Sequence record: NC_027402.1 | DNA length: 64,000 bases | Reading direction: 5' to 3' (one strand) | Position numbers and translations under genes: made by a program | In this document: positions 31,524 through 44,822 of the stretch, piece after piece | How the letters are laid out: each line of letters begins with the position of its first letter | Position numbering within the stretch: position 1 is the first letter of the stretch | Notes under the pieces: generated by a model | Database searches by the model: none | Told to the model about the DNA's origin: nothing | Seen by the model: the letters and a program-made list of their open reading frames with translations, nothing else

Positions 31524-32147
31524 ATGTTAAACTCAGTGGCGCTGGATGGTCCGGACTTTTCTGGCAAATCAACACTCGCGAAAATGATTCAAGCGATGTT
31601 GCGCTCCGCTGGCGTTAATGTCATCATCGTCAATCACCCGACGAATACCACTGAAGCCGGTATTAGTGCACGTTCTCTGGTTATCCAGCACGCTTCTAAC
31701 GAACGCATTGCTAAAGCGATGTGTCTGGATTTCCAATACACGATGGATTTCGTTGTACCAGAGCACGATGTCGTTATTTTTGACCGTTTTTGTCAATCGA
31801 CTATTGTCTACCAGGGCGTCGATGGTAAAGGGGAAGTTTTCCGTTCACGGGTATTAGACCACATTAACGCACCGAAACTTTACGTGGCAACCGATGTATC
31901 CTACGAAACCGCCACAGAACGCTTTAAGAAGCGCGCAGAGGCCCAGGGCAAGAACTGGGATGATGAGGTACTGACAGCGAAGTATCTGCGCTCACAGACT
32001 GATTGGGACGCGTTACGCGACCACTACCGTTTTGCTTTCCACATCACCACAGATGGCGGCGATAAGTTCCCGCTGATGCGTGTTACGGCTGACGACGATA
32101 TAGCGTTACAAGCCGCGCGTATCGTTGAACGTATTCTGGCAGGTTAG
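31524..32147 (+). CDS. tmk: Thymidylate (dTMP) kinase
   Basis: VALDGPDFSGKST P-loop; VIFDRFCQSTIVYQG; start moved to ATG 31524. Confidence 0.88.
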   Translation: MLNSVALDGPDFSGKSTLAKMIQAMLRSAGVNVIIVNHPTNTTEAGISARSLVIQHASNERIAKAMCLDFQYTMDFVVPEHDVVIFDRFCQSTIVYQGVDGKGEVFRSRVLDHINAPKLYVATDVSYETATERFKKRAEAQGKNWDDEVLTAKYLRSQTDWDALRDHYRFAFHITTDGGDKFPLMRVTADDDIALQAARIVERILAG

Positions 32148-41093: not shown

Positions 41094-41179
41094 TGGAGAA
41101 TTTAACGCCGATTGAGATAGTGGCGCTATTGACCCTAGGTTACATGGATTTGATTTTAACCCCATTAATTATCGAGTGA
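41093..41179 (+). CDS. 28-aa hydrophobic peptide (absent from ORF track)
   Basis: SD GAGG; TAATG coupling; MENLTPIEIVALLTLGYMDLILTPLIIE. Confidence 0.5.
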   Translation: MENLTPIEIVALLTLGYMDLILTPLIIE

Positions 41180-41183
41180 ATAA

Positions 41184-41669
41184 ATGAAACTACAAACCGA
41201 GGTTAAGGAAATACCCGCACAAACCGTGGCATCCGCGAGTGGACTGATACTGTCTATACCGTGCGACGAATTTAAAGACTCGGCCCGTCCCGACGAAACG
41301 ATATCGTTAGCATTACGTCGCGGACACGTTTTCTGTGAATTCGACGCGCCTGTGATTAAACCGTGTCAATCGTTCGGGGAAGTAAAGGCCGCCATTGATC
41401 GGATACGTTGTATTGAACTCGTACGCGTTTGCGGTTATGTATCGAACGTCTGCTATGGCGTTGTCGATGGTTACTTTCAACTCCGCGGTGAATTCACACC
41501 ACACGGCCCACTCAAAGCGTTAGCGATTGAAGTGATGCGTGCAGGCACCATCATGATTTCTCCACGTATAGAACTCGATGGATATGGGAAGATTGTTTGC
41601 ATCCCATCTTTCGATGTTGTGGCAGAAGAAACCCCACGTTATCAATTTCTACGTACGGTGAAACAATGA
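41184..41669 (+). CDS. Degenerate T4 gp21-like prohead protease paralog
   Basis: RGHVFCEFDAP, GEFTPHGP and ISPR line up with the GExxHP, (T/K)PxGP and SxR pattern; catalytic His not evident. Confidence 0.5.
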   Translation: MKLQTEVKEIPAQTVASASGLILSIPCDEFKDSARPDETISLALRRGHVFCEFDAPVIKPCQSFGEVKAAIDRIRCIELVRVCGYVSNVCYGVVDGYFQLRGEFTPHGPLKALAIEVMRAGTIMISPRIELDGYGKIVCIPSFDVVAEETPRYQFLRTVKQ

Positions 41670-41998
41670 AGAAAGTTTTAGTTCTGTTAGGCGCACTCGT
41701 TGCGCCTATGGTTGCCCACGCTGCGGACAAACCACTCTTACTCGACCAGGATGTTTACGAACGTGTATTCCTGGAATGCGCTAAAACCTTTAACGGACCA
41801 CAGAAAACAACCTTTAACGATTTGGACGAAGCGTTAGAGGTCTGTCGTGACACTGCAAAAGAAATCGCGGTACGTCAAGGAACCCTCAAAATGGCGGTGG
41901 GTAGCAACTGGGAAGAAGTGCAGGTGATGGAAAAACCGGGTTACATGGTCGACCTGAACGCTAAGTTGATGCGTGAAGAAAAACAGAAACAAAAGTGA
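41666..41998 (+). CDS. Secreted protein with Cys pair
   Basis: Signal peptide MKKVLVLLGALVAPMVAHA; FLEC...D.LEVCRDTA. Confidence 0.75.
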   Translation: MKKVLVLLGALVAPMVAHAADKPLLLDQDVYERVFLECAKTFNGPQKTTFNDLDEALEVCRDTAKEIAVRQGTLKMAVGSNWEEVQVMEKPGYMVDLNAKLMREEKQKQK

Positions 41999-42006
41999 GG
42001 TAAAGG

Positions 42007-43014
42007 ATGACGAAGCTCGTTTCGTTTTCAGCAGGGTTGGATTCCACCTGGATAATGTATCAGCTGTTGTGCAAAGCACCGGCCAATGAAGCACGACATG
42101 TCCGTCCTGCATATTTCTCCATGTGGAATGGAGGTAACGCGAACTTCATGGAAATTCTTTGTAGTGTGGCCATTGTTGAACGGTTAATGGACAGATACCA
42201 CGCACAAACCGATCGTGTTACATGGGCGGTGCTCGGGGAAGAGAACTTTCCGCCTGTCGTTAGCGCCGGCTACGCTAACGGCTGGTCGCCTCTGGTTCAG
42301 CAAGGCAATGTTGTTAACGGCCTCGCTAAACTGATGTGCGACATTACACGCAAACAGCACCACGCCTATGCAGTTGTTGGCTGGAATAAGCTAGATGCGT
42401 TGGAGAATAGTCTAGAGCTGGGAGATTGGACATTAGACGAGTACGCTCGCTTAAAGAACCTTTATAGCGAACTGATGTATTTCCAAGATCATGCCGGCCG
42501 CGTTCCACCGCTTCTAACACCTGCGTGGGATAAAGAGAAACTGGAAATGTGGCAGGAGTTGCCGGAAGACATTCGTAGATTGCTGCAGGTCAGTAACTAC
42601 AACAACTACGAATTCGCGATAGACCGTGAGAATAACATGCTCATCGTTTATGCCCATCCGTCGGCAAAGTCGCAGAATTATCGTAGTCTTGGTATTACAC
42701 CGTCTGTGGGATGGGAGATTAAAATCAACGATGCTTACAGACGGGTATGGTGCTCTGCTCTTGGTGGTGCTATTTCTGCTATGGGTTTGGACGTACCGAC
42801 TTTTGCTAACTTTAAGGACCCGAAAAGAAATCACACAACCTTTACGGTAACTGAAGATACCGAAAGACTGTTTATCACGTCATTTACAGCAGAAGAGTGG
42901 TGCGAATATGCACCGCATTTTAAAGCGCTTCAGGAGAAAGAAAAAGAGAGAGCGAATAATGCCAAAGCAAGTAAAGCTGTGGACGCTCCAACTGGCGAAG
43001 TGGCGGATAGCTGA
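42007..43014 (+). CDS. QueC-like PP-loop (adenine nucleotide alpha-hydrolase) protein
   Basis: N-terminal LVSFSAGLDST; AVVGWNKLD; LLTPAWDKEKLEM; no QueC Zn-Cys cluster. Confidence 0.7.
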   Translation: MTKLVSFSAGLDSTWIMYQLLCKAPANEARHVRPAYFSMWNGGNANFMEILCSVAIVERLMDRYHAQTDRVTWAVLGEENFPPVVSAGYANGWSPLVQQGNVVNGLAKLMCDITRKQHHAYAVVGWNKLDALENSLELGDWTLDEYARLKNLYSELMYFQDHAGRVPPLLTPAWDKEKLEMWQELPEDIRRLLQVSNYNNYEFAIDRENNMLIVYAHPSAKSQNYRSLGITPSVGWEIKINDAYRRVWCSALGGAISAMGLDVPTFANFKDPKRNHTTFTVTEDTERLFITSFTAEEWCEYAPHFKALQEKEKERANNAKASKAVDAPTGEVADS

Positions 43015-43342
43015 AAAACGGAATTTGCCAAAGCTGGATATAACAGTTAAGTCGGGGCTGAAATATTTGGCACCCGACTGGGACTTTCTGATGGACTACA
43101 AGAAGTCTGACAAAGGCCCCGACGCAGAAGCTGCGTATACCAAACGCTACCTGCAGAAACTTAGTCGGTTGTTTGATGAAGACACTGATAAGCTGATAGA
43201 GATTCTCCGCCGGGGCGAGGTCGTACTAATGTGCTATTGCCCACCGGGGAAATTCTGTCATCGCCACTTGCTAGTTTCTTACCTTATTGAAATCGGTGAG
43301 TGGTTCGGTTATGAAGTAATTTACATGGGCGAGTTATCGTAA
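42959..43342 (+). CDS. DUF488-like protein
   Basis: YLAPDWDFL...YTKRY; VVLMCYCPPGKFCHRHLL. Confidence 0.7.
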   Translation: MPKQVKLWTLQLAKWRIAEKRNLPKLDITVKSGLKYLAPDWDFLMDYKKSDKGPDAEAAYTKRYLQKLSRLFDEDTDKLIEILRRGEVVLMCYCPPGKFCHRHLLVSYLIEIGEWFGYEVIYMGELS

Positions 43343-43353
43343 GGAGAGTCCTC

Positions 43354-43749
43354 GTGAAATTGATTATGCCTAAAACCGTTCCTAATCAGGATATGGTTAC
43401 GACTACACTGTTTTCTGAATCATTACGCAACTCTGTACGTCAGACCGCTTCACGTCTAGACGTGGCAGTTGAAGAACTCGACCCTGAAGTCTTCATGAAG
43501 TATGCGTTTATTGCAGAAGGTTACGCGATCGCCCTGACTTATGCGCGGTATGTCGATGACGTGACAGAAGCTAAACGTTATTTAGAAGGCTGTTGTCAAG
43601 TTTTCCGTGAAGAAATCACCGAGATGGAGATGGTTGACCGTGGCTTACCTGAATTTGTAAAGGTGGGTTACGATAAGTTGTTGCAATCCATCGCGGATGA
43701 GATCAAACGTCGCGGGTTAACTGTTGTGCACAGTGCTACACTGCACTAA
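43354..43749 (+). CDS. Hypothetical acidic helical protein (131 aa)
   Basis: SD TAAGGAG, GTG start. Confidence 0.75.
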   Translation: MKLIMPKTVPNQDMVTTTLFSESLRNSVRQTASRLDVAVEELDPEVFMKYAFIAEGYAIALTYARYVDDVTEAKRYLEGCCQVFREEITEMEMVDRGLPEFVKVGYDKLLQSIADEIKRRGLTVVHSATLH

Positions 43750-43763
43750 CAGCGTACGAGTAG

Positions 43764-43802
43764 GCTACCACACGATCATATGTGTGGTAGCTTATTTTTT
43801 TT
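43764..43802 (+). terminator. Intrinsic terminator
   Basis: GCTACCACAC...GTGTGGTAGC then T run. Confidence 0.8.
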
Positions 43803-43818
43803 GTTTCTGGAGGCGTTA

Positions 43819-44352
43819 ATGGCAGACCGCTATCAGCCCGACCTAACACTCTCGTCGAAAGCGCTTGTCGTGGCGTTAATTAATCACGATAACGGCTTGT
43901 CATTATCGCCTGACGAGATTGTGATAAGCGGAGTAGGGCCAATCGACTTAGGTGTTGAAAGTGCCCGTACCTCGCAAGCGTACATTGCGAAAGCACGTAA
44001 ACCTAACGGCAAGAAGGTTACCGTCTATTACGACCGTCTAGTCGCTAATAAGATTATCGACCCGCAAGGACCGATACTGGTTACTGTAGCTCCCGGCGAC
44101 ACCTATGGTGATTTAGCGACAGTTGTAAACCAGTTATGCGGTTTAAACTTGTCACGTGAAGACATCTCGACAGGGGTTATTACACCAACAAACGAGCCGT
44201 TGATTGCAGCGATGAGTGACGATTCACCGGCTTGGACGGCTACCTTTACATTCACGGCGTTTAATGAAAAAGAAGCTGTGGCAAGTCTGGATGAAGAAAC
44301 TGTTTTATGCATCGGTGATGATGCAGTGTTAACCTACGGAGACGATGCATAA
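43819..44352 (+). CDS. Virion structural protein with tail paralog N-domain (anchor)
   Basis: SD GGAGG; KKVTVYYDRL...VNQLCGLNLSREDI. Confidence 0.75.
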   Translation: MADRYQPDLTLSSKALVVALINHDNGLSLSPDEIVISGVGPIDLGVESARTSQAYIAKARKPNGKKVTVYYDRLVANKIIDPQGPILVTVAPGDTYGDLATVVNQLCGLNLSREDISTGVITPTNEPLIAAMSDDSPAWTATFTFTAFNEKEAVASLDEETVLCIGDDAVLTYGDDA

Positions 44353-44822
44353 TGGCAACTGTAGTCAAAAAGAAACGTTTGCATGAACTCGATTCTTACG
44401 ACGGTGATAAGTCGAGCGCAGTAGCGCTTATTAGCGTTGATGAAAAGGAGTACAAACTTCCTCTCAGTGAAATCGGCGGCGGGGCAGATGCAAACCCTAT
44501 CCAAAACTTATCCGGTGCTGACGGTATCGTTGAAATAGATCCCAATATTGCGGACGACTTCATTATCCGTTTAGGTGACCCCACCACTGCGCTTTCTATC
44601 ACACCTATTACCGACCCGGTTCCGGGTACGCGATATGAGTTATTACTGACGCTACGTCAGGGTACCGGTGCAAACAAAATCACCTGGCCGGCTTCGGTTA
44701 AATGGCCTAACGGTGCAGAACCTCCGTTATCGTACACGCTAGACGCCGAGGATGTGTTGTCTTTGTCATCTACGGATGGCGGTACAACCTGGAAAGGGGC
44801 CATTTGCGGAACAGGATACTAA
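44352..44822 (+). CDS. Tail-fibre-type adaptor protein
   Basis: LTLRQGTGANKITWPASVKWPNGAEP.LS....DVLSLSSTDGGTTW, a beta-sandwich common in phage tail-fibre proteins. Confidence 0.65.
   Translation: MATVVKKKRLHELDSYDGDKSSAVALISVDEKEYKLPLSEIGGGADANPIQNLSGADGIVEIDPNIADDFIIRLGDPTTALSITPITDPVPGTRYELLLTLRQGTGANKITWPASVKWPNGAEPPLSYTLDAEDVLSLSSTDGGTTWKGAICGTGY

Follow-up and report, generated by a model that had tools for sequence, protein, structure and literature searches.

The 64,000-nt stretch analysed here (the window) covers bases 62,001-126,000 of Salmonella jumbo phage SPN3US (JN641803 / NC_027402; 100% identity), the genome of which is 240,413 bp long; positions are in window numbering unless marked as genome. 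The subject is a pair of overlapping genes, SPN3US_0119 and SPN3US_0120, whose products gp119 and gp120 are annotated in RefSeq as hypothetical and as a DUF488 family protein, respectively. An earlier note on this DNA, made from the letters alone, had picked out an SAGLDS pyrophosphate-binding loop (PP-loop) in the first product, a CxC...CHRH element in the second and a 56-nt overlap between the genes; the two motifs are read in the translations and the overlap in the sequence (Table 1). The N-terminus of gp119 is MTKLVSFSAGLDSTW, and a Shine-Dalgarno-like GAGG (41997-42000) precedes its start. Another Shine-Dalgarno-like sequence, GAGAGAG (42946-42952), precedes the start of gp120, and this ribosome-binding site, like the start codon, is located within the 3' part of gp119.

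Table 1. Features of the gp119/gp120 locus, in window numbering
Feature	Position	Strand	Remarks
SPN3US_0119 (gp119), 335 aa	42007..43014	+	Diverged PP-loop ATP pyrophosphatase of the QueC-like branch; core ~residues 1-240 plus lineage-specific C-terminal extension
PP-loop S8-A-G-L-D-S13 of gp119	42028..42045	+	Aligns to SGGxDS of Cap9, QueC and TilS
Q98-Q-G-N101 and G125-W-N-K-x-D130 of gp119	42298..42405	+	Family-specific; invariant or near-invariant columns
P172-A-W174-D-K-x-K178 of gp119	42520..42540	+	HMMER second-domain alignments match it to PL(x)4K, the lysine motif of QueC and Cap9
SPN3US_0120 (gp120), 127 aa	42959..43342	+	DUF488-N3a, phiKZ gp151 orthologue; RefSeq uses the same ATG
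gp119/gp120 overlap, 56 nt	42959..43014	+	Different frames; read from the sequence
Putative active-site loop C92-Y-C94-P-P-G-K-F-C100-H-R102-H103 of gp120	43232..43267	+	Between strand 87-92 and helix 101-115 (AlphaFold2)

Fold, motifs and distribution of gp119

No Pfam (E<=1), NCBIfam or PADLOC match was obtained for gp119, and its sole family match is phrog_8825, a family of unknown function. The AlphaFold2 model, computed with 11 homologues, has a mean predicted local distance difference test (pLDDT) score of 81.7 and a predicted template modelling (pTM) score of 0.86. All solved structures that match this model are PP-loop enzymes, both with Foldseek against the PDB and in a Foldseek-independent search of 48,161 chains. 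Foldseek places Cap9 first (E 5e-5), then LarE, ThiI, QueC, argininosuccinate synthase, ArtA, YcfA and GMP synthase; the independent search returns the same order (13.7 for Cap9, 11.8 for QueC), and Cap9 and QatC are within the three closest solved structures. As modelled, gp119 possesses the Rossmann-like α/β/α core common to the solved PP-loop members. A profile of the 46-member gp119 family finds Cap9 in the PDB at E 6.1e-5, followed by QueC (0.0022) and TilS (0.0028). Weak Pfam QueC matches occur in nine of the 46 members and ATP_bind_3 matches in four, while neighbours in the ESM Atlas and BFVD come from viruses and often bear an automatic QueC annotation. Because the fold, the Cap9 profile match and the Pfam QueC matches of these nine relatives coincide, the PP-loop call goes beyond a motif coincidence: the assignment is solid, and the QueC-like identity put forward in the earlier note is upheld, the QueC branch being the best available placement. 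Identity with QueC, QatC and Cap9 is 12-16% over ~175 residues.

The canonical QueC carries SGGxDS, YxQxHxxE, VPxRN (R99 essential), YPDC (Y131 essential), a conserved lysine and the zinc motif C(x)8CxxCxxC (Libby et al., PMC13329287). Part of this set is retained in gp119. In the PP-loop, which comes after strand 2-6, G10 and S13 are invariant across the 46 relatives, as are P172 and K178 of the lysine motif, the family form of which is P-x-W-x3-K. The YxQxHxxE element may be kept in a weakened form, [F/M]-x-[Q/N]-G...E: HMMER aligns the family v-s-Q-g...E to the Y-G-Q-x-H-x-x-E of QueC with a two-residue insertion, SPN3US having M39-W-N-G...E49 at this site and homologues from Erwinia phages F-N-Q-G...E. 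At motif level, gp119 reads L-V-Q-Q-G-N for VPxRN and G-W-N-K-x-D for YPDC, the motif order suggesting that QQGN and GWNKxD occupy the sequence positions of these two elements. The zinc site is gone. None of the five cysteines of gp119 (22, 52, 111, 249 and 299) is conserved in 11 close or 46 distant relatives, no column of either alignment reaches 50% Cys, and C(x)8CxxCxxC was not found; the lack of the QueC zinc cysteines, already remarked upon in the earlier note, is a property of the family. With no conserved cysteine in the family, a zinc lid, an iron-sulfur (Fe-S) cluster and a catalytic cysteine are therefore excluded. Conservation stops at about residue 240, the last invariant positions being K221 and G229, and the remaining C-terminal part is lineage-specific.

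Comparison with the characterized members of the QueC family underlines these differences. Cap9, the QueC-family ligase of type IV cyclic-oligonucleotide-based antiphage signalling systems (CBASS; PDB 9nto chain B), is a protein of ~185 amino acids with a structural zinc and YxDC and RN residues, and its gene adjoins those of a cGAS/DncV-like nucleotidyltransferase (CD-NTase) and Cap10 (PMC13329287; 10.1101/2025.04.06.647259). In the Cap9-CdnD structure, D117 and Y115 of YxDC together with R86 of RN hold the deazaguanine (10.1101/2025.04.06.647259); none of the three has a motif-level counterpart in gp119, which is longer by an extra C-terminal region, has QQGN and GWNKxD in place of these motifs, and is encoded by a genome without any TGT-like gene. 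QatC of the QatABCD system (PDB 9y01 and 9y02) displays a variant zinc motif and a set of its own, D(x)4R(x)7WxR, HP and P(x)4TK, and is encoded beside qatA, qatB and qatD (PMC13329287). Neither this motif set nor the operon context is seen at gp119, for which PADLOC has no match. As compared to canonical QueC, gp119 is without the zinc motif, the essential VPxRN arginine, YPDC and the linkage to queD and queE. Judged by its motifs, gp119 is not an ordinary QueC: since the zinc lid is lost and the residues binding 7-carboxy-7-deazaguanine are replaced, it would not be a preQ0 synthase. Deazaguanine as a substrate becomes merely less likely, because the remodelled pocket of QatC still accepts it.

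The genome agrees with this view. The earlier note had reported no queD, queE, folE or dpdA in the window, and this holds for the whole genome: Pfam QueC (PF06508), TGT (for TGT/DpdA), PTPS (QueD) and GTP cyclohydrolase I (FolE) have no match at E<=1, in searches whose positive controls were found in 10 to 14 of 14 control genomes, depending on the family. Two adjacent radical S-adenosylmethionine genes lie outside the window (genome 139,310-143,693); both score best as peptide maturases of the CXXX-repeat/PapB and HxsB/HxsC types and far under the QueE cut-off, which rules them out as queE. With no preQ0 pathway found in the rest of the genome, gp119 is an orphan. The sole tRNA gene detected by ARAGORN in the whole genome encodes tRNA-Trp(CCA) (genome 1771-1846). 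tRNA-Trp carries no queuosine, and with this as the sole phage tRNA, a role of gp119 specific to phage tRNA was set aside.

A word-based search identified 17 relatives of gp119, and an exhaustive profile search of 1.84 billion proteins returned 46 representatives at E<=1e-3; a scan of IMG/VR gave only three loci. Identity is 93-100% within Seoulvirus, 64-68% in STsAS/SPAsTU and pEa_SNUABM_29, 31-36% in many Erwinia jumbo phages and 35-37% over approximately the first 246 residues in Wellingtonvirus. More distant members, reached via relative P0028, occur in the Klebsiella phage Miami group, the Pseudomonas phage EL group and a few Aeromonas phages. The six contexts examined are all phage-like contigs, one of which (L011) additionally has Peptidase_S80 and a phiKZ gp29-like gene. 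To date the family is known from jumbo-phage contexts; it represents a variant of the PP-loop/QueC scaffold that is new and invisible to Pfam. In phage EL (L021 4001-5771) the gp119-family gene is directly upstream of the thymidylate kinase gene, and in contig L011 (5001-6867) it overlaps the start of that gene. Other neighbours of family members are Dam methylase, acetyltransferase, RNase H and exonuclease genes. In SPN3US itself, the neighbours are small phage proteins and the DUF488 protein, and the thymidylate kinase is encoded ~10 kb upstream (window about 31542-31946). The thymidylate kinase adjacency and the Dam methylase, RNase H and exonuclease neighbours point to a link of the family with nucleotide or nucleic-acid metabolism.

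gp120 and its association with gp119

gp120 matches Pfam PF22751 (DUF488-N3a, "active DUF488-N3 subclade") with E 1.3e-11 and 45.3 bits for a cut-off of 27, and its AlphaFold2 model has a pLDDT of 95.9. The DUF488-N3 clades are said to go back to work of Burroughs and Aravind in 2023. Residues C92, C94, F99, C100, H101 and R102 are invariant among 19 sequences; the invariant C...CHR loop and the Pfam score bear out the DUF488-like identity given to this neighbour gene in the earlier note. gp120 also weakly matches Pfam DUF4326, which has been placed in the rhodanese-phosphatase superfamily and predicted to process ribose phosphates in ADP-ribose derivatives (Iyer et al., PMC9503650). Homologues of gp120 are found in 290 phage records, among them phiKZ, many jumbo phages of Pseudomonas, Erwinia, Serratia, Klebsiella and Vibrio, and the 85-kb Aeromonas phage APT65. 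The phiKZ homologue, gp151 (PHIKZ151), belongs to the same Pfam family, has the same C...CHR loop and shares 39% identity with gp120 over its full length. Antisense knock-down of gp151 raises plaque-forming units by approximately one order of magnitude and strongly alters phage transcript levels at 30 min (PMC12571901). This phenotype arises in a phage without any gp119 relative.

The earlier note had considered the two genes as a module, and its co-occurrence in other phages was examined. Seoulvirus and many jumbo phages of Erwinia conserve the pair, mostly overlapping, at identities as low as ~25-31%. Twelve phage records are common to the two tblastn tables, and in 11 of these the two genes overlap or abut; the tblastn coordinates imply an overlap similar to that of SPN3US in STsAS, JN03 and Asesino, and in a metagenome contig (L006) encoding a 25%-identical relative the PP-loop and DUF488 genes share 1 nt. 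This part of the claim therefore stands for the lineage. It weakens outside it, as each gene is also found without the other. Whole-genome profile searches with positive controls detected the PP-loop gene without DUF488 in Miami and EL, and DUF488 without the PP-loop gene in phiKZ and APT65; in Noxifer, DUF488 is ~127 kb away from a weak PP-loop relative, the only one present, and in Kwan the pair is interrupted by two small genes and one for an AAA+ ATPase. No DUF488 occurs within 5-6 kb of the distant gp119-family members.

Some observations on the genomes of Kwan and phiKZ complete this survey. Kwan gp150 (L013 4465-4815) bears the annotation "putative GIY-YIG catalytic domain protein" but belongs to DUF488-N3a (Pfam E 1.2e-9), and the ATPase encoded between it and the gp119 homologue is a 580-residue AAA+ protein (Cdc48/ClpX-like). 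Kwan gp147, whose gene overlaps that of the gp119 homologue, is not a DUF488 protein. phiKZ gp152, encoded upstream of DUF488, was considered as a diverged gp119 and rejected (hhalign probability 0.1); it matches the UvsX-like gene of SPN3US instead.

In phiKZ and Noxifer the DUF488 gene follows a UvsX-like recombinase gene in the order UvsX-x-DUF488-x-gp149, whereas in SPN3US it overlaps gp119. The former order seems to be the ancestral context of DUF488. The SPN3US homologues of phiKZ gp152 (UvsX-like) and gp149 (a head protein) are 283 nt apart (genome 187,987-190,416), with no DUF488 match between them, and DUF488 would therefore have relocated by ~84 kb to its place next to gp119. The overlap may also have left its mark on gp119, which has a conserved acidic tail (D-x3-G-E-V-A). 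Because this tail is gone in Kwan and L006, both of which are without a long DUF488 overlap, its best explanation is dual coding, the same stretch of DNA also encoding the structured N-terminus of gp120. We conclude that the pair, as far as gene order and sequence can tell, would be a lineage-specific arrangement permitting co-translation and not an obligate two-component system.

Upstream of the pair, SPN3US_0118 (41666-41998, 111 amino acids), directly adjacent to gp119, exhibits a signal-peptide-like N-terminus (MKKVLVLLGALVAPMVAHA). Its presence varies: contigs of related phages fuse position 41665 to 42007, and several phage genomes match the region in two pieces. The preceding gene, SPN3US_0117 (41184-41669, 161 amino acids), is named "head maturation protease" in RefSeq and matches phrog_7478 at E 9.5e-48 and Pfam Peptidase_S80 at merely E 0.013. 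The SPN3US prohead protease is established by experiment as gp245 (PMC10052503); SPN3US_0117 is probably a short paralogue or bears a mis-transferred name. Sequencing runs over 41100-44400 yield contigs only, partly from SMART-type libraries and from wastewater, and the loose contig ends in these runs are SMART template-switch or primer-like sequence (e.g. ...ATCAACGCAGAGTACATGG). The libraries marked "RNA?" are probably random-primed amplified material. Being contigs only, the runs are uninformative on the transcription of gp119 and gp120.

Candidate activity of gp119 and rival explanations

As its PP-loop is intact and invariant, gp119 is probably an active ATP pyrophosphatase that adenylates its substrate. 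Among PP-loop enzymes, those that transfer sulfur (ThiI, MnmA, TtuA/NcsA and LarE) use cysteines or Fe-S clusters, and every PP-loop sulfur transferase known to us needs a conserved cysteine. Those without conserved cysteines form C-N bonds, such as QueC, Cap9, QatC, NAD synthetase, GMP synthetase, TilS and argininosuccinate synthetase. The lack of a conserved cysteine and the amide-forming activity of the nearest relatives suggest that gp119 would be a C-N ligase or amidotransferase. The candidate pocket residues, the invariant W126 and W174 with Q98, D130, K178 and K221, could suit a planar base-like ligand. The two pocket tryptophans, the missing cysteines and the thymidylate kinase adjacency in other phages are consistent with C-N ligation of a substrate that is planar and nucleotide-like.

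The preferred reading, held with roughly even confidence, is that gp119 would be a catalytically competent member of the PP-loop family, likeliest a C-N ligase on a substrate other than that of preQ0 synthesis, and gp120 a separate, non-obligate neighbour. The gp119 family would descend from, or be nearest to, the QueC/Cap9/QatC branch and retain its ATP/pyrophosphate-binding loop and lysine motif. gp119 would adenylate a carboxyl or carbonyl group of another planar, nucleobase- or nucleotide-like substrate, and an amine would resolve the adenylate. gp120 would be a distinct, cysteine-based DUF488-N3a enzyme of the rhodanese-phosphatase superfamily, widespread in phiKZ-like phages. In the SPN3US/Erwinia lineage its gene would have moved beside gp119, and the overlap there could allow translational coupling; the two proteins would be co-expressed neighbours, not obligate partners.

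Several points weigh against this reading. The QueC branch is ahead of the other PP-loop branches by only ~2 Z units, and the correspondences between gp119 and QueC motifs are positional, without residue superposition. Loss of the QueC motifs is an uncertain guide to substrate, as QatC has remodelled its pocket and yet uses deazaguanine. A search of the ESM Atlas with residues 200-335 of gp119 gave nothing above 0.87, leaving the last ~100 residues without an assigned fold. In this lineage, a real functional coupling could lie behind the conserved overlap and the move of DUF488 to its place beside gp119. Moreover, neither protein is mentioned in the one SPN3US paper examined.

The coupling argument leads to the strongest of the alternatives, namely that gp119 and gp120 of the SPN3US/Erwinia phages act on one substrate, gp119 for example adenylating or ligating it and gp120 removing or transferring a phosphate or providing a reactive cysteine. 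The near-constant overlap or abutment in the records listed in both tblastn tables, extending to the 25%-identical metagenomic relative, the position of the gp120 start and ribosome-binding site within gp119, and the departure of DUF488 from its ancestral UvsX neighbourhood all argue for it. Miami and EL on one side, phiKZ and APT65 on the other, the three intervening genes of Kwan, the distant members without DUF488 nearby and a GEVA tail that looks like a dual-coding by-product speak against it, and we consider it unlikely, though worth keeping in mind. Another reading, in which gp119 would be a phage ligase of the Cap9/QatC type that, during infection, joins a carboxylate resembling a nucleobase to an amine of a protein or nucleic acid, and gp120 would process the product in the SPN3US lineage, is distinctly improbable; if true, it would represent a new phage-directed modification of macromolecules, or a subversion of deazaguanylation-dependent immunity. 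The two genes might also be thought of as a thiolation system, the PP-loop enzyme adenylating a nucleobase carbonyl and a persulfide on a gp120 cysteine delivering the sulfur, in the manner of YcfA or of ThiI and its rhodanese domain. This is very doubtful: unlike PP-loop sulfur transferases, gp119 has no conserved cysteine or Fe-S ligands, its closest relatives are amide-forming enzymes and not thiolases, and Miami and EL possess the PP-loop family without DUF488.

Two further explanations would tie gp119 to deazaguanine. A Salmonella host should supply 7-carboxy-7-deazaguanine. This compound is needed by defence systems of the Qat and type IV CBASS types (10.1101/2025.04.06.647259, PMC13279940), and gp119 might mimic or antagonise QueC-family immunity, represented by QatC of QatABCD and Cap9 of type IV CBASS, by consuming it or by mis-modifying or sequestering the N-termini of QatB or the CD-NTase. 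Such a counter-defence, suggested as a possibility in the earlier note, draws on the host-supplied metabolite, on Cap9 and QatC being among the three closest solved structures and on Cap9 being the top sequence match. It is opposed by the absence of motif-level counterparts of Cap9 Y115, D117 and R86 and of its zinc site, by the lack of a PADLOC match for gp119, and by the position of the gene, which in several phages is among genes of nucleotide or DNA metabolism and not within an anti-defence island. Around gp119, neither QatABD nor a CD-NTase or Cap10 was seen, CD-NTase not having been searched for separately. Overall, counter-defence appears highly improbable. The other explanation, that gp119 is an ordinary QueC making preQ0 from host 7-carboxy-7-deazaguanine for tRNA or DNA modification, has in its favour that one JGI record labels a relative 7-cyano-7-deazaguanine synthase and that several phage neighbours in BFVD carry the same automatic name. 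It has very little credibility left: neither gp119 nor the genome has a Pfam QueC match, the zinc motif, the essential VPxRN arginine and YPDC are missing, the genome lacks queD, queE and folE as well as a transglycosylase that could insert a deazaguanine, and the only phage tRNA is a tRNA-Trp.

Beyond their role in queuosine precursors, enzymes of the QueC family were demonstrated in 2025-2026 to link a nucleobase to proteins, in two anti-phage systems. The gp119 family is nearest to those enzymes, without their zinc lid or known substrate-binding residues, and is a well-defined candidate for another chemistry on the virus side. The narrower result is that gp119, by its motifs, is not an ordinary QueC, that its module with gp120 would not be obligatory and that experiment reveals a separate role for DUF488 in phiKZ; attention therefore shifts to gp119 alone and to nucleotide metabolism.

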